From Lytechinus pictus (taxonomy: Eukaryota), in contig NC_087257.1 of the NCBI RefSeq assembly GCF_037042905.1, positions 124,001 to 188,000 on the forward strand: DNA of 64,000 nucleotides, written 5' to 3'. Positions 8,199 through 57,404 of the stretch are shown here, piece after piece. The position numbers and the translations under genes were made by a program. How positions within the stretch are numbered: the stretch's first letter is position 1; each line of letters starts with the position of its first letter. The notes beneath the pieces were generated by a model. It did no database searches, was not told the DNA's origin, and saw only the letters and a list, made by a program, of their open reading frames with translations.

Positions 8199-8225
8199 GG
8201 TGCCGTGGCCGAGTGGTCTAAGGCG
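8199..8225 (+). repeat. tRNA-derived (A-box) SINE-like head, truncated; second copy at 9594-9620
   Basis: GGTGCCGTGGCCGAGTGGTCTAAGGCG resembles the 5' half of tRNA-Leu/Ser; no B box or 3' half seen. Confidence 0.55.
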
Positions 8226-9403
8226 TCTTGTCAAAAGTGTGTGTGCGTCTTTTCCTTTATATTCTACGGCGAACCCACTGAGCGTGCCATTGGCCATTTT
8301 TCTTTCCTACGGGTCAGTGCGCTTGCCATTCAAGACGCCAGCGTGCCCTTTTGCAGCGAAAATGGAAGTGTGCGCTTTTATCTTTTCTTTTGACACCCCC
8401 CGGTTGGCTCTCCGATAAGATGTTTTTGCATGAGCGCCCTCTATGTCCACGATTTCGGCGTTTTAGGCAAACTATTGAACGCCCGATCTCTAGTCACTGA
8501 TCTGAATATCGTTGTGTCCTTCCGTTGGTGTGCCTAGTCGCATTGGGGTATATATTTTCCAAAGTTACGCTTTCACAATTTCTTTTGATGATTTTTCGTT
8601 TCGGGTTTCAGTATATGACAAATTTCAATTAGATTTAGATTTCATTTCTTTAATAAAACAATTACCGTTAAGATATTGACTTTCTAAAAGTAAGTATTCA
8701 GGCGTGGGTAAGATTTTTTATTTATCACACTGAGCCCACACTGTCAGCATTGTCGGGTGAAAAGGAAAAATATGGAATTGTCCTTAACATCTTTGTAAAC
8801 GAAATGCGAAACCCCTCGCAAAAGATGCAATATATATCATACCTGGGTCCAAAAATGATGGCATTTAAATTTATACAAAAAAATACATACATAACATGCA
8901 AGCGTTTTTTGTGGAAAAAAGGATGAAAACTAAAGGCATCGTTGAAATTCAAATTTGAGCTAAACATAGGCCTATATCTAATTTAGCCAAAGTGCACAAC
9001 AATTTTACTCTTATTATACACATGTTTAAAAATTGACATGTTAGAAAATATATATTCACACATAATACAGATGCCGTGCAAAACAAACGAATAAAGTATC
9101 ATTAATTTGAACTTTAAAAACTAAATTGGATGCTCAAACAGTCATATCGGTCATTGTAGCTTAAATGCACAATTCTTGAATTTCATTGCCCGAAATTCAG
9201 AACAAAAGTACTTTCGTTACTTTGTAAGACCATTACAAACACCTTCACCTTCGAACGACATCAAAACCACTTAAAAAAATAAATATTGGAATTATCAAAG
9301 AAGTTGAGGCAGTCTTGACCATGAATTGAGTTGAGTGTTTATAAAGGAATTATAGCGTCTTCTAATGAATCCCATTCTAAACTTTGAATGACCGATGAAA
9401 AAT
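8221..9403 (+). repeat. ~1.2-kb dispersed repeat block X; second copy at 56180-57404
   Basis: Collinear similarity from aggcgt(c/g)ttgtcaaaagtgtg to accgatgaaaaat. Confidence 0.92.
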
Positions 9404-13501: not shown

Positions 13502-14156
13502 TGCCGGGATGCCCCCGAGACTTTACCACAGATTTGTACACATAGCTCCATCTAGTAGTTGTTCATTGCTGACTGATATTTTGTTATTAACAGTGACTTT
13601 TTGTGTATTTCATTTCATTTCCCGGTGTCTGGAGCAGAAATGCCACATTTTTCAAAAGGTTGATAAAAACTTCATCTTTCTAACCAAACCATACTTGGGC
13701 TTTAAGTTATCAATGAAGATGCCCAGAAACTTTGCATACATTGCTTACAAGAAAGAGGTATAAAGCGGTTTGTTTTATTTCCTGGTCAAAAAAACAATCC
13801 ACGGTTCATGATGCTTTACATTCCAGTATTAAGCCGCGAAGTTTGTAGAGGACGTAACTTGCGCGAGATATTTAAAAGGGAGATAAAACGTGGGATGTGC
13901 AGTTTAGTTATATAATTCCTAATAACATCTGCTGTGTTTTTCAGATCACGCAATTGCAACACGCATGCGCTATCCGAATTTTTCCTGTATAAGGGACCGT
14001 GTGCAAAATAATTCAAAAGAAAAAATAAACGGGGGAATGAAACATTCATGAAATTGTGTAAACAAAGACGAATACTACTACTTCTACAACAACTTCTACC
14101 AGGCGCGGATCCATGGGGGGGGCGAGGGGGCCTTGCCCCCCCCCCCCCCCTTGGCA

Positions 14157-14620
14157 TGAAAAAAGAAGAGGGAAAGAAAAAGAAAAAAGAGGGGAAAGGA
14201 AAAGGAGAAAAAAAGAGAGAGGAAGGAGGAAAGAAGAGAAGAGAGAGAAAGGGGAAAAGAGAGAGGGAGAGGGGGAAGGAAGAAGAGGAGAAAAAAGAAA
14301 GAGGAAAGGGGGAAAGAAAAGAAGAAAAAGGGAAGAGGGGGAAGGAAGGGAAGGAAAAGGGAGAGGAAAATGGGAAAGAAAGAGAAGGAAAAAGAGAGGG
14401 AAAGGAAAAGGAGAAAAAAAAAGGAAGAGAAGAAAAGGGAGGGGGAGGGAGAGGGGGAAGAAAAAAGAGGAAGAGGGGAAAAGAAAAGGAGAGAGAGGAA
14501 AGAATGAAGAAAAAAGAGAGGGGAAAGACAAAAAGAAAAAAGAAGAGGGGAAAGAAAAGAAGAAAAAAAATTAGAAGAAGAGGGGAAAGAAAGAGAAAAA
14601 AGAGGAAGAGCAGGAAAGAA
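14157..14620. repeat. GA-rich polypurine low-complexity tract (copy at ~49955-50378)
   Basis: Almost pure A/G sequence. Confidence 0.95.
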
Positions 14621-15645
14621 AATGATGTTCGAACCAAAAGGGCGCCGAAATGATGTTCGAAGGAATGTCAAAATGAAGTTCGAATTGGGGGCCGAATTGA
14701 TGTTCGAAGGGGGGGGGGGAGGGGGCGAATTGCTGTTCGACGTAGGGGCGCCAAATTGATGTTCGAACTAGGGGGGGGGGCGCCAAATTGATGTTCGAAC
14801 TAGGGGGGGCGCCAAATTGATGTTCGAACTAGGGGGGGGGGCGCCAAATTTATACTCGAGCTAGGGGGGGGGGAATAATATACCAACTAGGGGCGCGAAA
14901 TTGATGTTTGACCTACATGTAGGGGCGCCGAATTGATATTCGAACTAGGAGGGCGCCGAAATGAAGTTTGAAGGGATGTTAAAATGATGTTCGAACTGGA
15001 GCGCCAGATTGATACTCGAACTAGGGGGGGGGGGGAAGGGGGCCGAATCGATGTTGGAACTAGGGGGGCGCCAAATTGATACTCGAACTAGGGGTGCTCA
15101 GAATTGATGTTGGAACTAGGGGGCGCCAAATTGATAATCGAACTATGGGGCGCCAAATTGATGTCGGGCCTACATGTAGGGGTGCCGAATTGATATTCGA
15201 GCGCCGAAATGATGTTCGAAGGGATGTTAAAATGATGTTCGAACTGGGGGCGCCAAATTGATACTCGAATCGATACTCGAATTGATACTCGAATCGATGT
15301 TCGAGCTAGGGGGGCGCCAAACTGATACTCAAACTAGGGGGCGCCGAATTGATATTCGAATTAGGGGGGCGCCAAATTGATACTCGAGCTGGGGGGTGGG
15401 GGCGAAATGATATTCGAACTATGGAAGCCAAATTGAGTTCGAATGGATGCCAAAATGCCAATTGGGGGCGCCAAAGTGATGTTCGACCTAGGGAGGCCAA
15501 ATAGATGTTCGACGTAGGGGGGGGGTTGCACCGAATTGATGTTCGACGTAGGGGTGCAAAATTTATGTTCGACATCGGGGAGCGCCGATTGAATGTTCGA
15601 ACTAGGGGCACCAAATTGCTATTCGAACTTGGGGGCGCTAAAATT
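14620..15645. repeat. ~28-32-bp degenerate tandem array (GGGGCGCCAAATTGATGTTCGAACTA); copy at ~50378-51575
   Basis: Dozens of adjacent copies with variable G runs. Confidence 0.95.
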
Positions 15646-16029
15646 GTGTATGGGTATGGCTTAAAAAGAATGCAACTAGTATAAGTTATACAAGTTGCAT
15701 TCTTTTTAAGCCATATACCTATAATTGCATAGGTTACAAAGCACATGTTAACATCGTCACGTTCAACACCAATAACAAGCAAGCAATGACCCGCCGTGTA
15801 GCTAGTTGTAGGTCGGGATAACTTGCGCTCCATAGTTATTTGGAAAGTGGATATTGATAATAACCGTATCAGACCGCCCCGATCACATTACAAGAATTCG
15901 TGTTATTATTTCCGCATTCTTACATTCCGTCCCGAAGAGACTTCCGAGAAATTCTCAAAGTTACGAGCATGCGCATTATGGTCAGGAAAGCGGGCAAGGA
16001 GCGAATTCAAACTCGCCAGTCTGCAACTC

Positions 16030-16168
16030 ATGGCGCCCAGGCGACCACGCCCAACCACAAAGTTCTCAAGTATCAATCTTCAGGTTGCGAAAATCGAAAA
16101 AGAAAAGCGGAGAGGCTAAAGCAAGCAAGCTGGCTCCCTAAACAAGTACCTCCGCCCAAATTTGAGAG
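16030..16168 (+). pseudogene. Putative first exon resembling a hAT (Tip100/ZMYM1-like) transposase N-terminus; copy at 51958-52092
   Basis: SGCENRKRKAERLKQAGSLDKYL in copy Y'; GTAGGA donor; upstream GCATGCGCA NRF1-like motif; frameshifted. Confidence 0.5.
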
Positions 16169-17295
16169 GTAGGAACACATGGTGAAAAATGAACATATAT
16201 CGATTGATAATTTGATGTCTCATTGAGAAGTTAGAATATAGTGAATCCCAGAAAAAAAGAAACCGTAATTCGGTGAAAGTTTTTGCTGCCATAATCATAA
16301 TTTTTCTTCATGTGATGTATAAATCGAAATATATGATTTCTTTCTGTCATTTAAAGACCATATCAATGGTCATAAAACATGCATGACTGAGTTAGAACAA
16401 TGGAAATGGTGTTACCAAATTTTCGTTTGCACGAGCAATTTTACGATTTTTCTAGCTTATACTGCTATCTATTCGGAAATCAAAGTTCATAACTGAGAAA
16501 TCAATTTCTTCTTTTTTTCATAATTATGAGATCCTCTTAGTAAAATATGAATGACGCACGGTCGAGAAAAAGTTGCATGAAACATACTTAATTCCCTACC
16601 TATTCGATGATGTTGGAAAAAAAACATTTCACGGCAAAAAATGTTCAGTTATGCCAAATTGAATATTTGTTTCCTTTGAATCATGGCTCAAATCTCATGA
16701 CCAGTTGACCACCATAGTCATGAATGTATTTCGACCTTAGTGATGTCAGTATGCTATACATTGAACCCTGGGCTATGAGGATAATTGACTGACGGCTACT
16801 TTGTTATTTGGAGGCTAGATCTATTTATATAGTTCATATGGGGAGCTAAAATATCGGCCTTATAGCTGAGTTCCAGTGTATTTCCTACCCTGCTCTGGGG
16901 CCTTCTCATACGATAGTTGACATAGACTCTCTGATATTTGACATTTACCAAAAATAAATATTGGCACATTTTGTGCGCACGTCAACATTTCGTGTGTCAC
17001 TCTGTGGATTTTGCTTGCCAACCGAATATCAACCCCCCCCCCAAAAAAAAAGAGCCGTTATTTGCCCACAAGGTCAAAACATTTCTATTGATGTATAATT
17101 ACCATTACCATAACATACAAAATAAAACATGCATAAAAAACATTTTGGACTTAATGATTTCACAGATTCAAGTAATCTATTTCTTTAACGGCTTTTGGGG
17201 TCATTTTCCAAACGATATTGGATTCGACGTTTTCTTTGTACACTGCAAAATCATGCAGTTTCCAGTCAGCTAGTCGGGTAATTCCATGGATAGAA

Positions 17296-17454
17296 CAGGG
17301 TCCGAGGAAGCGGGGGCTTGGGGGCTTCAGGCCCTCCCCACTTTTGTCAAAACCGTGTGCAAAAACGTAAAAATTACCATAATTTTATGAATGTGAATTT
17401 TTGCATGGTCAGCAGCCCCCCCCCTCCACTTTGAAAACCGTTCCGCGGCCCCTG
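17296..17454. mobile_element. Small MITE (CAGGG(T)CCG...CGGCCCCTG)
   Basis: Imperfect TIRs, flanked by TAGAA on both sides; left half is missing in copy Y'. Confidence 0.6.
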
Positions 17455-18465
17455 TAGAAACTGGTGAACCGGCAGAAAGTTAACTTCATTAATTTTGTAT
17501 TTTGCAAAGCATGTGAACCAGTTAATGAGGGAAATCTCAATTGGTCTAGGTAAAATACTGTTAAATGAGAAGTCCCCAAAGAAAACGGCCAGTCACCGAC
17601 TGGTGCATATTTCTTTCACAAGCAAACTAAAAAATAATATCCCTACGGGGGGGGGGGGGGCGTCAAGTAGATCTCAAACACTAAAGACAAATTCTTAGCA
17701 CGCCGTATCAACGGCAGGTAATGTTATTTTTAAGTTAGGCCCCCATAATCCCAAATCAACTAAATTAGATCTACTTCAAGTAGGTTTCCAAAAGTTTCAA
17801 AACTCCATAAACTCTACATATTATTTCACATACAACTAAATCTACATACAAGCTAAAGATCTATTGTATTTCAAGATTATGGTTGATGATTAACATAAAC
17901 ACAACGCCAAATAAATTCAAATTACTCAAGTCATATATTGATATCAAAATAAATATTTACATTTAGCGCATGTTTCCAATTCAAAACACTTTATAATTAT
18001 ATACACTACATGATAGAAAACATCTCAATGTTACTTATACCATCGAACTTGTCAGATACACGGGTTTATCTGACTATCTGCTAGTTTGTATAATACGACG
18101 TACATTTTTTATATTGTATTTTTTAAATTGAATACATCTAATGTGGGATATTAGCTTTAATCTTACACACGCTTTGGAATATCTGATTCTAGTTTTTAAT
18201 TTTGCTAACAACAAAGGGTTGTTTGCGTTGTTTATTGGTATGAATCAGGCCGACGAAAATGTGATAATAAATAATTTTAAACTGAGATATCAACAAACGT
18301 TAATAATATAAGAAATTAAAACATGCCTCTTAGAAATCATTGATGAAATAAAAGTAAACTATAAAGGGGAGATTCAGCTCCTTCTCATCATTGAATCAGT
18401 CGTCCCTCTGATAATGTAAGACATGCAATTATTAATTAAACATTTTATAATCTTTTTATTAACAG

Positions 18466-18674
18466 AGAGGACTCAAAGGAGTACTGGAACAGAACTTTTC
18501 AGAAGACGTCTGACGGAAAATCACGCTACTTTCGGTCTTCGAATTATATTAGATGTGAAAGGGGATGGTGGCTGCTTCTTTCATGCAGTCCACCATCAAC
18601 TAACAAAAGAATGTAAAGATAATAGCTACAACTTCAGAACATCCTCGAAAGATGAGGCTTTCCTGTGTCATTGA
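18466..18674 (+). pseudogene. OTU-like cysteine protease exon remnant (catalytic Cys loop); copy from 54489
   Basis: LDVKGDGGCFFHAVHHQL matches the OTU DGxCFFxAV motif; preceded by a polypyrimidine tract and AG acceptor. Confidence 0.75.
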
Positions 18675-20619
18675 TGATCCTAACGATGTATAACAAGTGA
18701 AACGCGTAACGTGTAACAAATGGATATTTGATTGTTTTTTTTTGTCTTAATTTCATGAATTACTAGTAGATCCATAAACTATTTAATTTATGTCAACATT
18801 TCAAAAAATTAATTTTGGTAAGATTTCGATGTTGATTCTCCCAACATTTTCTAAGTTCATTGACCCAGGCGGCCAGGCCTGCATTGACCCTAAACTACCT
18901 TTGACCTTGGTCATGTTACCTTAAACAAACGTAGTCAGGATATTTTGCTATACTTTATTACCCTTGTTTCCAAGTTTCATGAACTATGACATTTCAAAAA
19001 CTTAACTTTGGTTAAGATTTCAGTGTTGACGCCGTCCCCATCGTCAAAAAGAGGCGCCAATTATTGTCTCGCTCTGCTATGTAGGCGAGACAAAAATTAT
19101 GTTCTGTCCTAGCGACTTTTGTAACATGTTTTAGTAGGGGGCACGTAGGCAATTCGTCAATATTTTAATGAGTAATTCGTGAGCTTCACGAGCTGAGCAC
19201 TCCATAACTCTATTCCTAACAAAAGTCGCTCTTGTTTATTAAAGGCTAAGAAACAAAATATGAATAAGAGTTGTGAATTCTTCTTGCATGAAGGGAAGCA
19301 TTCTGCACTTTGACAAATGTATGAGAAGCGTCTGACTTTAACTGTTGTTTTTATATTGCTTGCAACACTTAATCCACTAATCCCAAACGGATAGGAAAAT
19401 ATAACAAGTGGTTTTATACTATTATATATAGGTCCTATATTTCAATTGGACGGTGAATGGAGTTCACGGCCAACAATTATAAAACTTTAGCAGTAGTGAG
19501 AGTATTATTCTTTAATCTTAGCAGATTGAATAACCGATTTTTTTTTGACATTTCTATTAATTTCAAATTACATGTTATGCTAACACTGTTTACCTTTTGT
19601 ACTGATACTCTTGATATTTATCAGAACAAATGAGGATTTCTATTCTTAGGTGAATGTTCTCTTGTTATTTCTCTATTGGAAAGCCGTTTGAGTAAAAATC
19701 GGTCTAGTAGTATAGTCACTAGTTACTACATGTATACTAGTAAACGTTTTGCATGTTCTAGGTGGGTAGACATTCATACCACAACGCATATCACAGTCTG
19801 AAATAGGATGTGCAGTATACCACCATGTGAACTTAATTGTCTATGCATATATCAATATATGTTATTTACAGAAATGTTGAAGTTTACTTGCAATATGTAA
19901 AGGAATAAATGAAACTTTCATTGTAATGGTGAAAGTTTCGGATGCGTTTTTTATTTTTTGACGAATCGTAAAATACTCAAATAACTGAAATAACTCTATG
20001 GTTTATATCGCTCCTATATTTTTGTTTCATGTAGTAATGGGTAAAAGACAGCTAGATACAGTTGATGACTGATACGGCACCTCTTCGTTTCCAACCTACA
20101 GTGGGAAATCGCATTGTAATTTTTTTAAACGAATTCCACTGGAGCTATTACGTGGATTTACTCAGGCCTAAACTGCATTGCTATCATTTACATTAATTGT
20201 TACATCTTGAAATAGTTGATGAATACAAGATACATGGGACCTTGGAATTCATGTTTCACTTGTATTGTATGAAAGAGAGAGATAAGAACCTATCGTCCTA
20301 AATGATGCGAACTTAAGAGCATTGTTGTCATATTTATATAGACATTGCCAATAAAGTATATTTTTACAGCATATTTATCTTTAGTATATTATATTTGTTT
20401 TATTCACACCGTTTACACGCATTCTGTTTCTTTTGAAAATCTATTTGGAGTATATACAACTTGAGCAAGATTATAAGATACATAACCTTTTGATACTTGA
20501 TATGATTGTTGCAAGAGCGGAAGAGCCAATATTTGTTGAATAGGATTGACAAGACAACTCACTGTTTGAAACGAAGTATGCCTATACAAAGCAAGATAGG
20601 TTTTCTGTGTGAAGTAAAT

Positions 20620-23600
20620 GAAAAATGAAAGCAAAGAATGCAAGAACTATTCGCTGCATCTTCTTTTCCATCTATATTATAATAGATGAAAGAAAGCGAA
20701 CTATTCAAGATGTCATGGTCGAAAACAACCTTTGATTTTCTAACAAAGCGAGGAATGCAATAACTAATCTTTGTATCTTCGCTCCAATCGGTTATTTTGC
20801 TTAATGGCAGAAAGCAAACTACTTAACGATGTCTTTGTCGAAAAAGCTTTTGATTTTTCGAACAAAGCGTGGAATGAAAGAAACTAATCTTTGCATCTTC
20901 GCTCCAATCGGTTACTTCATACTTCCATAGTTTTCATTTTGACCCACATACACGACTCTCTTTATTGGCTTTCTCACTCACACAAATTGTATTACATAGA
21001 ATCCAGTAGATGGCACTAGCTTCAGGTCAACTCCATTCACCCACATGATGATAACATAGAACACTGTACAATATATGTTATTATTATTCATTTTTATTCC
21101 ATTTTAAGTCCAGACATAATACACAAAGCAGATTTTGATACAAAGGTAAAAGTAATCGAAGTTATGTAGTAAACGTATGTCGTAGACAAAATAATTGCTA
21201 ACTGTTATATCTTCGCTTTAACACAATCCATGTATAGACGGAGATGTATAGAGGGAGAAGGGTTTCACTATATGGGGGAAGATCCAAAAATAAGAGGAAA
21301 ATCCATGAAAGCGATGGAAACTCAAGGAGTTGCAAAGGAAGTAATTTGGGGAGATCACAAAGACATGCTGGACAGGTTTGAAAAGGATTGTGTTCCAGGG
21401 ATGGCGTCGATGGAAAATCGTTGCGTAGCGATACCAGGGTGTATCATTTCCAATCACTACGAAACTATGTCAGACCAAGAGAAATTCGAAAAAAATGAAA
21501 GCAAACAATGCAAGAACTATTCACTGCATCTTCTTTTCTATCTATATTATAATATAAATTGAAATGTCATTGAAATGACAGAACATGACGTTCAACTTAA
21601 TTTCTTACAATATGCTGACGATACTCTATTTTTTGTTCAAGATGAAAAATCGTTAAGAGAAATATTAAACGAATTAAAAACCTTTGGTAGAATAGCAGGT
21701 CCAAAGATTAATAAAGAAAAAACAGCATTGATATGGTTAGGAGATATAAGTAAGAGATATGATATTAAAAAATACAATTTATCTTGGACTGTTAAGCCTG
21801 TAAAATACTTAGGTCACTATATTCATTCTGATAATGACAAATCGCTAAACTTAGAGTGGGAAGAAAAATTAATTAAATTGAAAAAGACTCTTGACAGCTG
21901 GTCAAAACGAAACTTAACTATTTTTGGTCGGGTAACTATTCTTAAATGTCTAGCACTTAGTCAAATAATACATTTCAGCATTGTTGATTCCATTCCAACG
22001 AAATGCACGAAAAGTTTGGATAATCTAGTGTTTAGATTCATTTGGAACAGAAAAGTAGAAAAAATTAAAAGATGTACTTTAACAGAAAATTATATTAATG
22101 GTGGAATAAAAATGACTGATGTACACCGCCAAATGCTAAGCTTTCGGTTAAAATGGTTAGGAAGGTTTTTGAATGACAAAACAGAAACATGGAAGAAAAT
22201 GTGTTCATATTGGTTTGACCTCCTAGGAGGTATCTCGTTCCTTTTAAATTGTAATTTCAGTACTAAAACACTGAAAATTATAAATGAAAGAAAAATACCA
22301 ACTTTTTACAAAGAAATACTGGAAGCTTGGGAATTTTTTAGAACTATTACCACATTGAAAGATGTTTGCATGTTTAACCCTAACTGTAATGATATTCGAA
22401 ATCAAATACTTTGGCATAATAAACATATAATATTTGATAACCAGTCTTTATTTTATGAAGACTGGTTTAGAAGTGATATAGTTTACTTAACATATATTAT
22501 TGGGAGAAATGGTTACATACCAATGGAAAACATTCAGAGAAAGATCGATATAAAATGAAGTAAGAATACTGTTATTTTTTTACTACACAAAACTAAAAAA
22601 GGCAATACCAGCAATATGGAAAAAAAAGTTTGAGCGATAATAATGGAATCACTTTCCGGCCTCATGTCTTTATTGTTCCCCAGGTAATGATTGGAAAAAG
22701 TTTGAAATGCATCAGTGATCTGAGGAGTAATACTATATATAAACTGTTCCCCTCAAAAAATACTTTCAACAATAAATGCTGTTAACATTGGGAGAACAAA
22801 CTTGATATTGATGTGAATTGGGCAAATGTATTTAAAAATAATTTTATTCAAGTTAGAGAAAATAAATTACGAGAGTTCAATCTTAAGTTATTATATAATC
22901 TCTTACCAGTAAAAAGTAACCTGTTTAAATGGAATTTTGCAACTGACGATTTGTGTCCAACATGCAAGTTTAAAGAAGATATTATACATGCTTTTATCGA
23001 CTGTGAACTAAACAAATCCTTTTTTGAATATATCAAAATTATTTTGCGAGAAGTTTACAATGTAGAAGTGGAAGTAAACATCAAACATTTGCTTAAAGTT
23101 GAAAGTGATAGTAAAACAAATCTCTTTGTAACTATTACATTTTGGTCAATATATAAAGTTATTTTGGATAGGAACAAATCAGGAACTGAAAAAAGAAGTT
23201 TTGTTTTGAAACATGTATTTATAAAAGAAATTAAAAAACGGATAGAAATGTACAACATTGATAGTAAAAAGACCAAAGAAAAAGATGAACAGCCCAAGGG
23301 CTTGCTACGATTCATGTAAGAACAATCTATGTAACTTGAATATGATTTTGTAATTTATGTAGAAATACTTGTGTTTCATAATTTATGATTAATTGTGTAA
23401 CCTATGATTTAAATGTGATTTACTGTGTAACCCCTGATTTGAATGTGAATAAATCCTCTGATAGAGGCAAAAAAGATCTACTGGATTCTATGTAATACAA
23501 TTTGTGTGAGTCAGAAAGCCAATAAAGAGAGTCGTGTATGTGGGTCAAAATGAAAACTATGCAAGTATGAAGTAACCGATTGGAGCGAAGATGCAAAGAT

Positions 23601-23863
23601 TAGTTTCTTTCATTCCTCGCTTTGTTCGAAAAATCAATAGTTTTTTCGACCAAGACATCGTTAAGTAGTTTGCTTTCTACCATTTAGCAAAATAACCGAT
23701 TGGAGCGAAGATACAAAGATTAGTTATTGCATTCCTCGCTTTGTTAGAAAATCAAAGGTTGTTTTCGACCATGACATCTTGAATAGTTCGCTTTCTTTCA
23801 TCTATTATAATATAGATAGAAAAGAAGATGCAGTGAATAGTTCTTGGATTCTTTGCTTTCATT
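20620..23863. repeat. ~390-bp inverted repeat pair (20620-21011 and 23476-23863), overlapping direct repeats at 21245-21553 and 24208-24603
   Basis: Reverse-complement and direct matches read from the sequence. Confidence 0.9.
21555..23475 (+). mobile_element. 5'-truncated L1/Tx1-clade LINE (ORF2 RT C-terminal half and zinc finger), disrupted
   Basis: LQYADDTLFF, KYLG, WSKRNLTIFGRVTILK, CPTCKFKEDIIHAFIDC; AATAAA and a short A tail at the 3' end. Confidence 0.93.
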
Positions 23864-24689
23864 TAACAAAATACCGATTGAAATAGATTGAAAAATCAAA
23901 AGTTGTATTCGACCAACAAGGTATATAGGTATAGTTCACTTTCTACCATTTAGCAAAATAACCGATTGAAGCGAAGAGGGAAACATATCAGTCTTTGTTA
24001 GTTTTTTTTTACATTCATTTTCGATAAATTTAATAGAGATAAAATGGCTCGATCTTCAGAGGTATCAGTTAGTTTCCGTAAATTCGAGGCAACCTCGCCT
24101 CTTAACGAAGATATCCTTGATCTACGAGGATATTCGTCACATAAAGCATTTTACAATAGCTGGATTTATTATCCTTTTTTATTGCGATTATGTTAGAGAA
24201 CATGATGATAGAGGGAGAAGGGTATCACTATATGGGGGAAGATCCAAAAATAAGAGGAAAATCGATGGAAGCGATGGAAAATCAAGGAGTTGCAAAGGAA
24301 GTAATTTGGGGAGATCACAAAGACATGCTGGACAGGTTTGAAAAGGATTGTGTTCCAGGCATGGCGTCGATGGAAAATCATTGCGTAGCGATACCAGGGT
24401 GTATCATTTCCAATCACTACGAAACTATGTCAGACCAAGAGAAATTCGAAAAAAATGAAAGCAAAGAATTCAAGAGCTATTCACTGCATCTTCTTTTCTA
24501 TCTATATTATAATAGATGGAAGAAAGCGAGCTATTCAAGATGTCATGGTCGAAAACAACCTTTGATTTTCTAACAAAGCGAGGAATGCAATAACTAATCT
24601 TTGTTATTTCTACAATGTTAGTATTCTACCTAAAATGTATTATGTAACATTAGCATTTTCAATCCTTCCATTCAAATTTTTGTTTGTTG

Positions 24690-25115: not shown

Positions 25116-25469
25116 CGTCATATTCTTTTGTGCGCGCGTCATGCTTGAGTGAACCTTTAGAATGGCCATATCGCCGTCATTATTCTCTGCTCGCATTGAT
25201 TCTTTTTTAAAGTGATATTACATTTATTCATGAACACATCATTATAAAACCATTATTCAATTGCCTCTTCGTCATGTGCCTATGAAATAAGATAATTTAA
25301 CATGCATTTAAGGCACTTATGATTGCCTGGGGGAGGGAGGGGCTGCCATTTTTGCGAAAAGTACACAGGGGCGCCAAAATCAGGTCGAATTTGGCCCCCC
25401 CCCCCCCCTCCCTACGAAATCCTGGATCCGCGCCTGGTTACAACTATATATGCAGTGACTAGTCACTTC

Positions 25470-49365: not shown

Positions 49366-52300
49366 ATTGCTGACTGATATTTTGTTATTAACAGTGACTT
49401 TTTGTGTATTTCATTTCATTTCCCGGTGTCTGGAGCAGAAATGCCACATTTTTTTCAAAAGGTTGATAAAAACTTCATCTTTCTAACCAAACCATACTTG
49501 GGCTTTAAGTTATCAATGAAGATGCCCAGAAACTTTGCATACATTGCTTACAAGAAAGAGGTATAAAGCAGTTTGTTTTATTTCCTGGTCAAAAAAACAA
49601 TCCACGGTTCATGATGCTTTACATTCCAGTATTAAGCCGCGAAGTTTGTAGAGGACGTAACTTGCGCGAGATATTTAAAAGGGAGATAAAACGTGGGATG
49701 TGCAGTTTAGTTATATAATTCCTAATAACATCTGCTGTGTTTTTCAGATCACGCAATTGCAACGCGCATGCGCTATCCGAATTTTTCCTGTATAAGGGAC
49801 CGTGTGCAAAATAATTCAAAATAAACGGGGGAATGAAACATTCATGAATTGTGTAAACAAAGACGAATACTACTACTTCTACAACAACTTCTACCAGGCG
49901 CGGATCCATGGGGGGGGGGGGCGAGGGGGCCTTGCCCCCCCCCCCCCCTTGGCAAAAGAAAAGAAGAGGGACAGAAATAGAAAAAAGAGGGGAAGAGGGA
50001 AAAGGAAAAGGAGAAAAAAGAGAGAGGAAGGAAGAAAGAAGAAAAGAGAGAGAAAGAGGAAACGAGAGAGGAAGAGGGGGAAGGAAGAAGAGGAGAAAAA
50101 AGAGAGAGGAAAGGAGGAAAGAAAAGAAGAAAAAGGGAAGAGGGGGAAGGAAGGGAAGGAAAATGGAGAGGAAAAGGGGAAAGAAAGAGAAGGAAAAAGA
50201 GAGGGAAAGGAAAAGGAGAAAAAAGAGGAAGAGAAGAAAAGAAAAGGAGAGAGAGGAAAGAAGGAAGAAAAAAGAGAGGGGAAATAAAAGAAGAAAAAAG
50301 AAGAGGGGAAATAAAGAAGTAAAAAAGGAGAAGAAGAGGGGAAAGAAAGAGAAAAAAGAGGAAGAGCAGGAAAGAAAATGATGTTCGAACCAAAAGGGCG
50401 CGGAAATGATGTTCGAATTGGGGGCCGAATTGATGTTCAAACGGGGGGGGGGGCGAATTGCTGTTCGACGTAGGGGCGCCAAATTGATGTTCGAACTAGG
50501 GGGGGGGGCGCCAAATTGATGTTCGAACTAGGGGGGGGGGGCGCCAAATTGATACTCGAGCTAGGGGGGGGGGCGAAATAATATTCCAACTAGGGGCGCC
50601 AAATTGATGTTTGACCTACATGTAGGGGCGCCGAATTGATATTCGAACTAGGAGGGCGCCGAAATGATGTTTGAAGGGATGTTAAAATGATGTTCGAACT
50701 GGGGGCGCCAGATTGATACTCGAACTAGGGGGGGGGGGGGGAAGGGGGACGATTCGATGTTGGAACTAGGGGGGCGCCAAATTGATACTCGAACTAGGAG
50801 GGCTCAGAATTGATGTTGGAACTAGGGGGCGCCAAATTGATAATCGAACTATGGGGCGCCAAATTGATGTCGGACCTACATGTAGGGGCGCCGAATTGAT
50901 ATTCGAGCGCCGAAATGATGTTCGCAGGGATGTTAAAAAGATGTTCGAGCTGGGGGCGCCAAATTGATACTCGAACGGGGGGGGGGCGAATCGATGTTCG
51001 AGCTAGGGGGGCGCCAAACTGATACTCAAACTAGGGGGCGCCGAATTGATGTTCGAACTAGGGGGGCGCCAAATTGATACTCGAGCTGAGGGGTGGGGGC
51101 GAAATGATATTCGAACTATGGAAGCCAAATTGAGTTCGAAGGGATGCCAAAATGATGTTCGAACTGGGGGCCGAATTGATGTTCGAATGGGGGGGGGGGG
51201 CGAATTGATGATCGACCTACATGTAGGGGCGCCGAATTGATTCTCGAACTAGGGGGGGGGGGCGCCGAATTGATGTTCGAAGTAGGGGCACCACATTGAT
51301 GTTTGAACTAGGGGGCGCCGAATTGATATTCGAACTAGGGGCGCCAATTTGATGTTCCAATTGGGGGCGCCAAAGTGATGTTCGACCTAGGGAGGCCAAA
51401 TAGATGTTCGGCGTAGGGGAGGGGGGGGGGTTGCACCGAATCGATGTTCGACGTAGGGGCGCAAAATTTATGTTCCACATCGGGGAGCGCCGATTGAATG
51501 TTCGAACTAGGGGCGCCAAATTGCTATTCGAACTTGGGGCGCCAAATTGATGTTAGAACTAGGGGGCGCTGAAATTGTGTATGGGTATGGCTTAAAAAGA
51601 ATGCAACTAGTATAGATTATACAAGTTGCATTCTTTTTAAGCCATATACCTATAATTGCATAGGTTACAAAGCACATGTTAACATCACGTTCAACACCAA
51701 TAACAAGCAAGCAATGACCCGCCGTGTAGCTAGTTGTAGGTCGGGATAACTTGCGCTCCATAGTTATTTGGAAAGTGGAAATTGATAATAACCGTATCAG
51801 ACCGCCCCGATCACATTACAAGAATTCGTGTTATTATTTCCGCATTCATACATTCCGTCCCGAAGAGACTTCCGAGAAATTCTCAAAGTTACGAGCATGC
51901 GCATTATGGTCTGGAAAGCGGGCAAGGAGCGAATTCAAACTCGCCAGTCTGCAACTCATGGCGCCCAGGCGACCACGCCCAACTACAAAGTTCTCAAGTA
52001 TCAATCTTCAGGTTGCGAAAATCGAAAAAGAAAAGCGGAGAGGCTAAAGCAAGCTGGCTCCCTAGACAAGTACCTCCATTTAAATTTGAGAGGTAGGAAC
52101 ACATGGTGAAACACGAACATATATCGATTGATAATTTGATGTCTCATTGAGAAGTTAGAATATAGTGAATCCCCAGAAAAAACGAAACCGTAATTCGGTG
52201 AAAGTTTTTGCTGCCATAATCATAATTTTTCTTCATGTGATGTATAAATCGAAATATATGATTTCTTTCTGTCATTTAAAGACCATATTAATGGTCATAA

Positions 52301-55300
52301 AACATGCATGACTGAGTTAGATTAATGGAAATGGTGTTACTAAATTTTCGTTTGCACGAGCAATTTTACGATTTTTCTAGCTTATACTGCTATCTATTCG
52401 GAAATCAAAGTTCATAACTGAAACATCAATTTCTTTTTTTTTTCATAATTATGAGACTCTCTTAGTAAAATATGAATGACGCACGGTCGAGAAAAAGTTG
52501 CATGAAACATACTTGATTCCCTACCTATTCGAAGATGTTGGAAAAAAAACATTTCAAGGCAAAAAATGTTCAGTTATGCCAAATTGAATATTTGTTTCCT
52601 TTGAATCATGGCTCAAATCTCATGACCAGTTGACCACCATAGTCATGAATGTATTTCGACCTTAGTGATGTCAGTATGTTATACATTGAACCATAGGCTA
52701 TGAGGATAATTGACTGACGGCTACTTTTTTCTTTGGAGGCTAGATCTATTTATTTAGTTCATATGGGGAGCTAAAAAATCGGCCTTATAGCTGAGTTCCA
52801 GTGTATTTCATACCCTGCTCTGGGGCCTACTCATACGATAGTTGACATAGACTCTCTGATATTTGACATTTACCAAAAAGAAATATTGGCACATTTTGTG
52901 CGCACGTCAACATTTCGTGTGTCACTCTGTGGATTTTGCTTGCCAACCGAATATCACCCCCCCCCCCCCAAAAAAAAAAAAAGAGCCGTTATTTGCCCAC
53001 AAGGTCAAAACATTTCTATTGATGTATAATTACCATTACCATAACATACAAAATAAAACATGCATAAAAACATTTTGGACTTAATGATTTCACAGATTCA
53101 AGTAATCTATTTCTTTAACGGCTTTTGGGGTCATTTTCCAAACGATATTTGATTTGACGTTTTCTTTGTACACTGCAAAATCATGCAGTTTGCAGTCAGC
53201 TAGTCGGGTAATTCTTAAAAATTTGTAAAAATTACCATGATTTTATGAATGTGATTTTTTGCAGGGTCAGCAGCCCCCCCCCCCCCTCCACTTTGAAAAC
53301 CGTTCCGCGGCCCCTGTAGAAACTGATGAACCGGCAGAAAGTTAACTTCATTAATTTTGTACTTTGCAAAGCATGTGAACCAGTTAATGAGGGAACTCTC
53401 AATTGGTCTAGGTAAAATACTGATAAATGAGAAGTCCCCAAAGAAAACAGCCAGTCACCGACTGGTGCATATTTCTTTCACAAGCAAACTAAAAATTACT
53501 ATCCCTACGGGGGGGGGGGCGTCAAGTAGATCTCAAACACTAAAGACAAATTCTTAGCACGCCGTATCAACGGCAGGTAATGTTATTTTTAAGTTAGGCC
53601 CCCACAATCCCAAATCAACTAAATTAGATCTACTTCAAGTAGGTTTCCAAAAGTTTCAAAACTCCATAAACTCTACATATTATTTCACATACAACTAAAT
53701 CTAAATACAAGCTAAAGATCCATTGTATTTCAAGATTATGGTTGATGATTAACATAAACACAACGCCAAATAAATTCAAATTACTCAAGTCATATTATGA
53801 TATCAAAATAAATATTTACATTTAGCGCATGTTTCCAATTCAAAACACTTTATAATTATATACACTACATGATAGAAAACATCTCAATGTTACTTATACC
53901 ATCGAACTTGTCAGATACACGGGTGTATTTTTTTTTGTTAGTTGATGGTGGACTGCATGAAAGAAGCAGCCACCATCCCCTTTCACATCTAATAAAATTC
54001 GAAGACCGAAAGTAGCGAGATTTTCCGTCAGACGTCTTCTGAAAAGTTCTGTTCCAGTACTCCAGTACGGGTGTATCTGACTATCTGCTAGTTTGTATAA
54101 TACGACGTACATTTTTTATATTGTATTTTTTAAATTGAATACATCTAATGTGGGATATTAGCTTTAATCTTACACACGCTTTAAAATATCTGATTCTAGT
54201 TTTTAATTTTGCTAACAACAAAGGGTTGTTTGCGTTGTTTATTGGTGTGAATCAGGCCGACGAAAATGTGATAATAAATAATTTTAAACTGAGATATCAA
54301 CAAACGTTAACAATATCAGAAATTAAAACATAGCGGACGTGTCCCTTACCTCTTAGAAATCATTGATGAAATAAAAGTAAACGATAAAGGGGAGATTCAG
54401 CTCCTTCTCATCATTGAATCAGTCGTCCCTCTGACAATGTAAGACATGCAATTATCAATTAAACATTTTAAAATCTTTTTATTAACAGAGAGGACTCAAA
54501 GGAGTACTGGAACATAACTTTTCAGAAGACGTCTGACGGAAAATCTCGCTACTTTCGGTCTTCGAATTATATTAGATGTGAAAGGGGATGGTGGCTGCTT
54601 CTTTCATGCAGTCCACCATCAACTAACAAAAAAAAATGTAAAGATAATAGCTACAACTTCAGAACATCCTCGAAAGATGAGGCTTTCCTATGTCATTGAT
54701 GATCCTAACGATGTATAACAAGTGAAACGCGTAACGTGTAACAAATGGATATTTGATTGTTTTTTTGTCTTAATTTCATGAATTACTAGTGGATCCATAA
54801 ACTATTTAATTTATGTCGACATTTCAAAGAATTAATTTTGGTAAGATTTCGATGTTGATTCTCCCAACATTTTCTAAGTTCATTGACCCAGGCGGCCAGG
54901 CCAGCATTGACCCTAAATTACCTTTGACCTTGGTCATGTTACCTTAAACAAACGTAGTCAGGATATTTTGCTATACTTTATTACCCTTGTTTCCAAGTTT
55001 CATGAACTATGACATTTCAAAAACTTAACTTTGGTTAAGATTTCAGTGTTGACGCCGTCCCCATCGTCAAAAAGAGGCGCCAATTATTGTCTCGCTCTGC
55101 TATGTAGGCGAGACAAAAATTATGTTCTGTCCTAGTGACTTTTGTAACATGTTTTAGTAGGGGGCACGTAGGCAATTCGTCAATATTTTAATGAGTAATT
55201 CGTGAGCTTCACGAGCAGAGCACTCCATAACTCTATTCCTAACAAAAGTCGCTCTTGTTTATTAAAGGCTAAGAAACAAAATATGAATAAGAGTTGTGAA

Positions 55301-56180
55301 TTATTCTTGCATGAAGGGAAGCATTCTGCACTTTGACAAATGTATGAGAAGCGTCTGACTTTAACTGTTGTTTTTATATTGCTTGCAATACTTAAGCCAC
55401 TAATCCCAAACGGATTGGAAAATATAACAAGTGGAATATAATATTATATATAGGTCCTATATTTCAATTGGACGGTAAATGGAGTACACGGCCAACAATT
55501 ATAAAACTTTAGCAGTAGTGAGAGTATTATTCTTTAATCTGAGCAGATTGAATAACCGATTTTTTTTTTGACATTTCTATTAATTTCTAATTACATTTCA
55601 TGCTGACACTGTTTACATTTTGTACTGATACTCTTGATATTTATCAGAACAAATGAGGATTTCTATTCTTAGGTGAATGTTCTCTTGTTATTTCTCTATT
55701 GGAAAGCCGTTTGAGTAAAAATCGGTCTAGTAGTATAGTCACTAGTTACTACATGTATACTAGTAAACGTTTTGCATGTTCTAGGTGGGTAGACATTCAT
55801 ACCACAACGCATATCACAGTCTGAAATAGGATGTGTAGTATACCACCATGTGAACTTAATTGTCTATGCATATATCAATATATGTTATTTACAGAAATGT
55901 TGAAGTTTACTTGCAATGTGTAAAGGAATAAATGAAACATTTTAATGGTGAAAGTTTCGGATGCGTTTTTATATTTTTTGACGAATCGTCAAATACTCAA
56001 ATAACTGAAATAACTCTATGGTTGATATCGTTCCTATATTTTTGTTTCATGTAGTAATGGGTAAAAGACAGCTAGATACAGTTGATGACTGATACGACAC
56101 CTCTTCGTTTCCAACCTACAGTGGGAAATCGCATTGTAATTTTTTTAAACGAATGCCACTGGAGCTATTACGTGGATTTA
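49366..56180 (+). repeat. Segmental duplication copy Y' (partner 13565-20160)
   Basis: Collinear similarity. Confidence 0.97.
53929..54066 (-). other. Inverted templated insertion of the OTU exon, flanked by a 10-bp direct repeat
   Basis: Reverse complement of ~54501-54637; ACGGGTGTAT at 53919-28 and 54067-76; absent from copy Y. Confidence 0.92.
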
Positions 56181-57404
56181 GGCGTGTTGTCAAAAGTGTG
56201 TGTGCGTCTTTTCCTTTATATTCCACAGCGAAACCGCTGAGCGTGACATTGTCCTTTTTTCTTACCTACGGGTCAGTGCTCTTGCCATTCAAGACGCCAG
56301 CGTGCCCTTTTGCAGCGAAAACGGAAGCGTTCGCTTTTATCTTTTCTTTTGACGCCCCCGGTTGGCTCTCCGATAATATGTTTTTGCATGAGCGCCCTCT
56401 ATGTCCACGATATCGGCGTTTTAGGCAAACTATTGAACGCCCGATCTCTAGTCACTGATCTGAATATCGTTGTGTCCTTGTGTCGGTGTGCCTAGTCGCA
56501 GTGGGGTATATATTTTCCAAAGTTACGCTTTCTAAATTTCTTTTTATGATTTTTCGTTTCGGGTTTCAGTATATGACAAAGTTCAATTAAATTTAGATTT
56601 CATTTCTTTAATAGAACAATAAAGCTTTAGCCCTTTAGCACGAGTATGTTGCTTTATTTTGAAGAATATACCGTTAGATATTGACTTTCTAAAAGTAAGT
56701 ATTCAGGCGCGGGTAAGATTTTTTTTAATCACACTGAGCCCACACTGTTAGCATTGTCGGGTGGAAAAATTGTCCTTCATCTTTGTAAACGAAATGCAAA
56801 TCCCCTCGTAAATGATGCAATATAAATCATTCCTGGGTCCAAAAATGATGGCATTTAAATTTATACATTGAAAAGCTACTGTGACAAAAAAAAAAAAATA
56901 CATCCACAAAATGCAAGCGTTTTTTGTGGAAAAAAGGATGAAAACTAAGGCCATCGTTTAAATTCAAATTTGAGCTAAACAAAGGCCTTTGTCTAATTTA
57001 GCCAAAGTGCACATCAATTTTACTCTTATTATACACATGTTTAAACATTGACATGTTGGAAACTTATATATTCACACATAATGCAGATGCCGTGCAAAAC
57101 AAACGAATAAAGTATCATTAATTTGAACTTTAAAAATTTAATTGGATGCTCAAGCAGTCATATCGGTCATTGTAGCTTAAATGCACAATTCTTGAATTTC
57201 ATTGCCCGAAATTCAGAACAAAAAGTACTTTCGTTACTTTGAAGGACCATTACAAACATATTTGCCTTCGAACGAAATCAAAAGCACTTAAAAAATAAAT
57301 ATTGAAATTATCAAAGAAGTTGAGGTAGTCTTGACCATGAATTGAGTTGAGTGTTTATAAAGGAATTACAGCGTCTTCTAAACTTTGAATGACCGATGAA
57401 AAAT
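56180..57404 (+). repeat. Repeat block X' (partner 8221-9403)
   Basis: Collinear similarity. Confidence 0.92.

Follow-up and report, generated by a model that had tools for sequence, protein, structure and literature searches.

A dispersed non-autonomous DNA transposon family of Lytechinus pictus that carries an OTU Cys-box exon, and its probable link to OTU-bearing hAT elements

Two copies of a repeated element with an OTU exon

We analyzed a 64,000-nucleotide stretch of the Lytechinus pictus genome (NC_087257.1, positions 124,001 to 188,000 of the forward strand; C13:124001-188000 in the contig labels used here), referred to below as the window, in which a repeated element carries an exon resembling the Cys box of an OTU protease domain. 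A sequence-only reading of this DNA had taken 16030-19500 for the relic of a spliced gene joining a hAT-transposase-like N terminus to an OTU deubiquitinase domain, and had proposed a hAT lineage with a deubiquitinase of its own. The genome searched comprised 812 Mb in 368 contigs, and homology searches were made with single-exon queries. The element lies within a stretch, copy X (window 13565-20160), which recurs as copy Y (49366-56180) with ~89-97% identity by segment, and the features of both copies are as follows.

14100..14113, +, left end of copy X, CAGGCGCGGATCCA with a G run behind it
14150..14610, +, GA-rich polypurine tract of low complexity, ~460 bp long, where GC and AT skew peak
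14620..15650, +, subterminal array of ~1 kb, ~35 units of 27-32 bp (GGGGCGCCAAATTGATGTTCGAACTAG), from Tandem Repeats Finder
15978..16168, +, exon 1 of copy X, its frame shifted by an insertion of 4 bp; donor GT at 16169-16170
16169..18465, +, putative intron 1 of copy X, containing unrelated repeats such as that at 17210-17531
18466..18671, +, OTU Cys-box exon of copy X, with phase-1 acceptor, DVKGDGGCFFHAV and a stop at 18672
18760..19140, strand not assigned, nested abundant short repeat, not part of the gene and transcribed elsewhere in the genome
19443..19500, +, second "OTU-like" stretch of the sequence-only reading (LDGEW...TLAV), unsupported
19501..20570, +, family-specific non-coding sequence; the C4 copy is homologous up to 20570 and diverges after it
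25423..25436, -, inverted CAGGCGCGGATCCA, a candidate right terminus that is not tied to copy X
49895..49908, +, left terminus of copy Y, CAGGCGCGGATCCA
51906..52092, +, exon 1 of copy Y, open frame, with phase-1 donor GT at 52093
53933..54067, -, partial duplicate of the OTU exon in inverted orientation, seen in copy Y and not in copy X
54489..54634, +, OTU Cys-box exon of copy Y, interrupted by one in-frame stop and frameshifted past ...QLTKK

In copy X the OTU exon starts at 18466 and in copy Y at 54489, in both cases after ACAG; it opens in phase 1 and contains ...LRIILDVKGDGGCFFHAVHHQLTK... / ...TENHATFGLRIILDVKGDGGCFFHAVHHQLTK..., and the phase-1 AG acceptor that had been proposed at these two positions was confirmed by the sequence. 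DVKGDGGCFFHAV aligned to positions 1-35 of the Pfam OTU profile (PF02338) and holds the Cys box DGGC, which has the D-G-x-C arrangement of an OTU domain followed by the aromatic residue and the Ala. Searched with phmmer against 1.84 billion representative proteins, the exon gave three matches, all short and two of them real, namely P0001 (112 aa, 57% identity, E = 2e-6) and P0003 (118 aa, 54% identity, E = 7e-4), the latter of which lies on L092, a TARA ocean scaffold of 7.3 kb. With the TARA OTU exon as query, tblastn against the genome returned the OTU-exon match at E = 6e-10. Judged by these scores, the likeness of the exon to OTU domains exceeds chance. Copy Y and its paralogues on contigs C3 and C13 also carry a 131-bp duplicate of the exon, inverted and placed ~420 bp upstream of it, and the two together make up a long inverted repeat capable of forming a hairpin.

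Exon 1 of copy Y is a 62-residue open frame with its in-frame ATG at 51906, ending ...SSGCENRKRKAERLKQAGSLDKYLHLNLR and followed by one extra base and by GTAGGA, a phase-1 donor. The sequence-only reading had placed this exon at 51958-52092; the exon and its phase-1 GT donor were found, whereas the ATG at 51958 is out of frame. Most other genomic copies have a start codon of the ...MASKKSSGCENRKRK... type (full reading MASKKSSGCENRKRKAERLKQAGSLDKYLRPNLR), again followed by GTAGGA, and this start codon is missing in both window copies, presumably lost through a small deletion.

A dispersed family with an exact left boundary

The 14-bp terminus CAGGCGCGGATCCA occurs in the window at 14100(+), 49895(+) and 25423(-), against a chance expectation of 0.18, and the terminal sequence and subterminal array claimed upstream of the exons are both present. 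The 21-bp left end had 156 exact matches in the genome versus 0 for the reversed control, and the subterminal array was found in every copy examined. As homology between copies ends exactly at CAGGCGCGGATCCA and the five copies compared (window, C4, C5, C17 and C1) have unrelated flanks, this position is a genuine boundary of the element on the left. On the other side, the C1 copy has an inverted terminus 85 bp beyond the equivalent of window 20256, and the inverted terminus at 25423(-) has only the terminal 14 bases in common with the left end. A match at L014 to window 25189-25270 was considered as the right end of the element and rejected, because it is another common repeat.

The OTU-exon peptide gave 30 genome matches at ~19 distinct loci on 12 contigs, with 78-100% identity, and the same stop ends each full-length match. 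Since the same truncated OTU frame recurs throughout, the family was amplified from a master copy in which this frame was already truncated. The exon-1 peptide had at least 72 genome matches, and order, strand and the GTAGGA donor were conserved across all copies examined. At at least 12 loci exon 1 precedes the OTU exon in the same order and on the same strand at a distance of 2.5-12 kb, the larger distances reflecting nested insertions. Donor and acceptor are both phase 1, and the putative intron is ~2.3 kb long; co-occurrence at at least 12 dispersed loci is stronger support for pairing of the exons than this phase match, which has a chance probability of 1 in 3.

Three copies (L051, L040 and L054), of one subfamily, hold a 1.15-kb miniature inverted-repeat transposable element in the intron, at the equivalent of window 16199. 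Its termini are CAGAGGCGTAAC.../...GTACGCCACTG, it is flanked by an 8-bp CATCGATT target duplication (hAT-like), and the GCTCGCGCTTCGCGCTCGCA units of its interior are seen again at window 25189-25270 and at ~12.2-12.6 kb. The short repeat of window 18760-19140 is also present in the intron of the C17 locus described below.

Because a flank of 535 bp upstream of the element terminus is common to copies X and Y, we regarded the two as a segmental duplicate and not as two insertions. Aligned to copy X, copy Y breaks at window 20160 and the C1 copy at 20256. The block that follows copy Y (56180-57381) matches 8221-9365, which lies 4 kb upstream of copy X, and this difference in the relative order of the duplicated blocks suggests either that the region was rearranged or that something inserted where copy Y breaks, at 56180. 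The region C3:483000-531000 (G000) repeats the element copies of the window at 95-100% identity and in inverted order; it represents a large duplication of recent date or else a haplotype that the assembly left uncollapsed.

Relatives of the OTU exon lie upstream of hAT transposase domains

We compared the window exon with OTU exons and OTU-bearing open frames found elsewhere, with the following scores.

Window exon versus P0001, 43.7 bits
Window exon versus the TARA exon (L092), 35.6 bits
Window exon versus the C17 exon, 19.2 bits
Window exon versus Ginger-like open frames with rve and OTU, <=12.6 bits
Window exon versus Helentron-type open frames (OTU and Herpes_teg_N), ~5 bits

Two of these relatives, the nearest ones with a context that could be used, lie on C17, a chromosome-scale contig of the same genome, and on the TARA scaffold, and have the following parts.

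C17, 4514900-4515085, +, OTU exon 1 (RADVRGDGNCYFRALADQL...), open frame
C17, 4515908-4516057, +, OTU exon 2, 31 bits, above the cut-off, open frame
C17, 4518534-4519085, +, DUF4371, open frame
C17, 4520031-4520183, +, Dimer_Tnp_hAT, open frame
L092, 182-550, +, OTU Cys-box exon, Pfam OTU 24.2 bits, above the cut-off
L092, 1127-1399, +, OTU exon 2 with the His box, OTU positions 56-102, E = 0.0018
L092, 3917-4183, +, DUF4371 exon, E = 1.3e-4

The four domain parts of C17 follow one another on a single strand in a span of 5.3 kb, and the locus (C17:4.5149-4.5202 Mb) is apparently intact. On L092, the exon after OTU exon 2 ends ...RKFNYEWLER and looks like the start of a TTF-type zinc finger region; joining the phase-1 donor at 1376 to a strong phase-1 acceptor at 1771 would keep the frame open, through a Ser/Pro-rich linker, into this TTF-like exon. 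Later exons of the scaffold carry the CxxHxLN and RW motifs of hAT transposases, and its DUF4371 exon matches established DUF4371 plus hAT loci of the sea-urchin genome. At both loci the OTU exon matched to the window stands ~3.4 kb upstream of the DUF4371 exons on the same strand, and 2.5 kb separate OTU exon 2 from DUF4371 at C17 and L092 alike. The OTU exons of the window, C17 and L092 all open at a phase-1 acceptor and must therefore be preceded by a coding exon with a phase-1 end, which in the window is what exon 1 has. C17 and L092 carry parts of the combination of OTU, TTF zinc finger, DUF4371 and dimerization domain that the sequence-only reading had suggested testing for. Most DUF4371 loci of this genome have no OTU nearby, and the TTF-like exon and OTU exon 2 of L092 had no match in it.

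Further searches for relatives added little: a word-based search with P0003 found only P0003 itself, a metagenome scan gave three loci, none in a hAT context and one bacterial, and the ESM Atlas yielded short OTU fragments only. At C2:34067036-34073280 (G000) there is a tandem array with a period of 233 bp, each unit of which holds a decayed version of the OTU Cys-box exon; the TARA exon matched it 10 times, with 35-45% identity, and the array looks like a satellite born from such an exon.

Origin of the family

On the strength of these comparisons we favor, with moderate confidence, the interpretation that window 14100-~20570 and its duplicate 49895-56180 belong to a dispersed non-autonomous DNA transposon family that originated from an OTU-bearing hAT of the DUF4371 type. 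The gene-fragment relationship to a hAT transposase gene is provided by the OTU exon. That a hAT lineage has an OTU protease of its own, as the sequence-only reading had it, is plausibly right, and what speaks for it is the OTU exon together with the C17 and L092 loci outside the window, not exon 1 or the relic itself. The chances appear evenly balanced for a broader statement, namely that these loci belong to an apparently new clade of DUF4371/TTF hAT elements with an N-terminal, intron-split OTU, occurring in echinoderms and at least one other marine eukaryote, of which the window family would be decayed offspring.

The family probably arose by internal deletion of an autonomous DUF4371-type hAT whose transposase began with an OTU domain, in which case the 5' gene stub alone would have survived. 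The element consists, in order, of CAGGCGCGGATCCA, the polypurine tract, the ~1-kb array, a short basic exon 1, the putative ~2.3-kb intron, the first OTU exon and non-coding sequence. If the family moved, it would have depended on a transposase supplied in trans that recognized the terminus and the subterminal units. The copies themselves are inert: all share the stop after the OTU exon, the window copies have extra frameshifts or stops and no start codon, and neither transcripts nor a splice junction were observed.

A number of results weigh against a descent from an OTU-bearing hAT. The first concern the OTU domain. By itself, the window exon scored 16.4 bits against Pfam OTU (E = 0.013) and did not reach the gathering cut-off of 23.3, and on the downstream open fragments Pfam OTU found nothing of the rest of the domain (central helix and His box); an alignment with L087 was weak (E = 3-5.5). 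Two stretches, 19443-19500 and 20056-20193, were considered as its mid region or His box and rejected; they had no Pfam OTU match and stood outside the top 25 window fragments in a scan with a custom profile for which five OTU domains had supplied their C-terminal halves. For that reason, LDGEW...TLAV at 19443-19500, which had been described as a further OTU remnant, does not exceed chance and is not established as OTU.

The second group concerns exon 1 and the transposase. The basic SG.E.RKRK...GSL.KYL exon may resemble the N termini of Tip100 / ZMYM1-like transposases; a Pfam search with exon 1 gave no family match, and no hAT or DUF4371 match lies near the exon-1 matches in the genome, so that its identification as the N terminus of a hAT transposase was not sustained. 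Neither L092 nor the 2 kb that precede the OTU exon at C17 contained anything resembling exon 1. A hAT, DUF4371 or other transposase core was absent from the window, as domain searches showed in agreement with the sequence-only reading, and from the family copies examined, and an autonomous copy with these termini or with exon 1 was not found.

The element ends are a third point. Followed through the C4 copy, the sequence past window 20570 is unrelated and contains no terminus. Neither candidate pair of ends shows an 8-bp target duplication, be it the pair in the window (ACTTCTAC versus GTTACAAC), whose 25423 end is not tied to copy X, or the pair in the C1 copy (TTTCAGGT versus GCTCCCGC), whose right end is not tied to the same element. 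The terminus opens with CAGGC, which agrees with YARNG at 4/5 positions, and the fifth base departs from this hAT rule.

Fourth, the relatives are distant. Identity of the OTU exon is ~41% among C17, L092 and the window and that of DUF4371 is ~27% between C17 and L092, and with such distances C17 and L092 are not the autonomous partner of the family. The C17-type OTU exon had a single match in the genome, and C17 may for this reason be a low-copy element or a domesticated or chimeric gene. That OTU and transposase exons make up one transcript at C17 and L092 is something we infer from their order, strand, spacing and phases.

Lastly, reads over 15600-20400 were inspected in four RNA-seq runs, three ribosomal RNA (rRNA)-depleted runs under the source species label and one run under a second species label. 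Depth in the exon-1 bins was at most ~0.2 and that of the OTU exon was zero, and the 16168 -> 18466 splice junction, by which the two exons would co-occur in a transcript, was absent from all four runs; the description of the locus as a spliced gene is not borne out by these data. This does not prove that the locus is silent. Coverage was confined to 17210-17531 and 18820-19140, both of them abundant repeats of unrelated sequence. Reads in intron 1 were 90-95% alike and mostly ran on into unlike sequence, and at 18820-19140, where depth was 90-260, reads again showed 90-95% likeness and loose ends; we therefore ascribed the reads to other copies of the repeats. The short repeat at 18820-19140, which also occurs at L093:1280-1520, contains units with TGACCTTTGACCTTGGTCAT, and its reads come near-entirely from one strand in the three rRNA-depleted runs.

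Alternative explanations

Exon 1 and the OTU exon may never have belonged to one gene, having come together by chance either in a composite element with a captured OTU fragment or as two older repeats whose phases coincide. This we consider unlikely, though it is the best placed of the alternatives. It accommodates the missing junction and the near lack of RNA over either exon, the 1-in-3 probability of a phase match and the lack of an exon 1 homologue upstream of the C17 or TARA OTU exons. It is also in line with the counts, as matches to exon 1 (72) and to the left end (156) outnumber the OTU loci (~19), implying that many members are without the OTU exon; further deletion, however, explains such copies equally well. 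Against it, order, strand and donor are conserved in all copies examined, and exon 1 is of the kind of upstream phase-1 exon that the C17 and L092 OTU exons need.

A second explanation traces the OTU exon to a host OTU gene or to an element of the Helentron or Ginger type, the neighborhood of OTU and hAT domains at C17 and on the TARA scaffold being due to nesting, without any OTU-hAT lineage. The genome is indeed rich in transposon OTUs (at least 25 giant open frames of Helentron type with OTU and Herpes_teg_N, and Ginger-like rve plus OTU), OTU domains are established in Helitron and Ginger elements (PMC2836005, PMC9741609), a single transcript with OTU and hAT parts is not demonstrated, and the TTF-like exon of L092 is without a genome match. 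The window exon nevertheless scored far lower against Helentron (~5 bits) and Ginger (<=12.6 bits) than against the two hAT-linked exons (19-36 bits), and RepHel and rve were absent from the window and from the surroundings of the family copies examined. Nesting would also have had to produce the same order, strand and 2.5-kb spacing at two independent loci of different lineages, together with the phase-consistent splice path of L092. Taken on these grounds, such a source is improbable.

That the locus is a decayed multicopy host gene family or a segmental duplication, with the "terminus" being the edge of another repeat, would suit the X/Y duplicate with its common flanking DNA, the near-identical region on C3 and the failure to find a target duplication, but it is very improbable, given that the copies lie on at least 12 contigs, share one precise left boundary while their flanks are unrelated, and by their 84-100% identity and shared defects speak for amplification of an already broken master copy.

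Comparison with known transposons

Helitron/Helentron proteins and Ginger1 transposases are known to carry OTU domains, and Mutator elements Ulp1 (PMC2836005, PMC9741609, PMC6431247), and transposon deubiquitinases have been proposed to protect transposition proteins from degradation or to engage DNA repair. In full-text searches of the literature we found nothing relevant on hAT or DUF4371 elements with an OTU or a deubiquitinase; Repbase was outside this scope, so that "undescribed" is provisional.

In its build, the window family is most readily set beside non-autonomous hAT elements such as Ds of Ac, with which it has in common a short terminus starting with CAG, subterminal arrays, a retained 5' gene part with loss of the core, and many dispersed copies that need a transposase in trans. 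It differs from them in the OTU exon of its gene stub and in two candidate end pairs without an 8-bp duplication. With DUF4371/TTF-type hAT elements (Tip100/ZMYM1-like), the likeness is that the relatives of the window OTU exon sit upstream of DUF4371 and Dimer_Tnp_hAT, whereas described members are without an OTU as far as the literature was searched.

Helentrons (PMC9741609) also have a papain-fold deubiquitinase fused to a transposition protein and are numerous in this genome, but they are distinguished by RepHel, by giant intronless open frames and by OTU domains that score ~5 bits against the window exon; no RepHel frame lies in the window, which speaks against placing the family in Helitron/Helentron. 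Among L066-L090 there are ~25 intronless open frames of 3,200-3,500 aa with OTU followed by Herpes_teg_N (VTD), for example G000:C14:22916476-22919742; these are of the Helentron type in PMC9741609, apparently young and abundant in the genome. Ginger1 (PMC2836005) shares a cut-and-paste transposase with OTU, but its OTU is C-terminal to the rve integrase, whereas the one discussed here is N-terminal, intron-split and hAT-linked; there is no rve in the element and Ginger-like OTUs reach <=12.6 bits, which speaks against Ginger1 as well. One Ginger1-like locus, L061 (G000:C14:1130718-1134098), is an open frame of 799 aa in which a complete OTU comes after the rve core.

Other features of the window

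Between copy X and the inverted terminus, window 20.6-25.1 kb is unrelated material that includes a reverse-transcriptase fragment of a long interspersed nuclear element (LINE). A truncated non-LTR (long terminal repeat) reverse-transcriptase open frame of 327 aa plus 168 aa lies at 21575-23319 and is flanked by inverted repeats of 97% identity (20623-21011 / 23476-23864). A duplicated open frame of 110-127 aa is found at 21230 and 24190.

Significance

The window copy itself is junk DNA of little import. Recruitment of deubiquitinases or SUMO proteases has occurred repeatedly among DNA transposons, with OTU/VTD in Helentron, OTU/Ulp1 in Ginger, and Ulp1 in Mutator and CACTA. If the proposed origin is true, hAT would be the third DNA-transposon group, after Helitron/Helentron and Ginger, with a recruited OTU protease, and would supply an independent example from a cut-and-paste superfamily that is among the best studied. 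In intact relatives such as those at C17 and on the TARA scaffold, the OTU would, by analogy with proposals for Helitron and Ginger proteases, remove ubiquitin from the transposase, from chromatin or from repair factors; an anti-silencing or anti-degradation role is pure speculation. Such elements would strengthen the idea that DNA transposons generally need an escape from host ubiquitin signaling, and because hAT transposases lend themselves to reconstitution in vitro and in cells, they would offer a tractable test of whether the transposase, chromatin or repair is the target of the protease; a concrete candidate for such work is the C17 locus, which is apparently intact.

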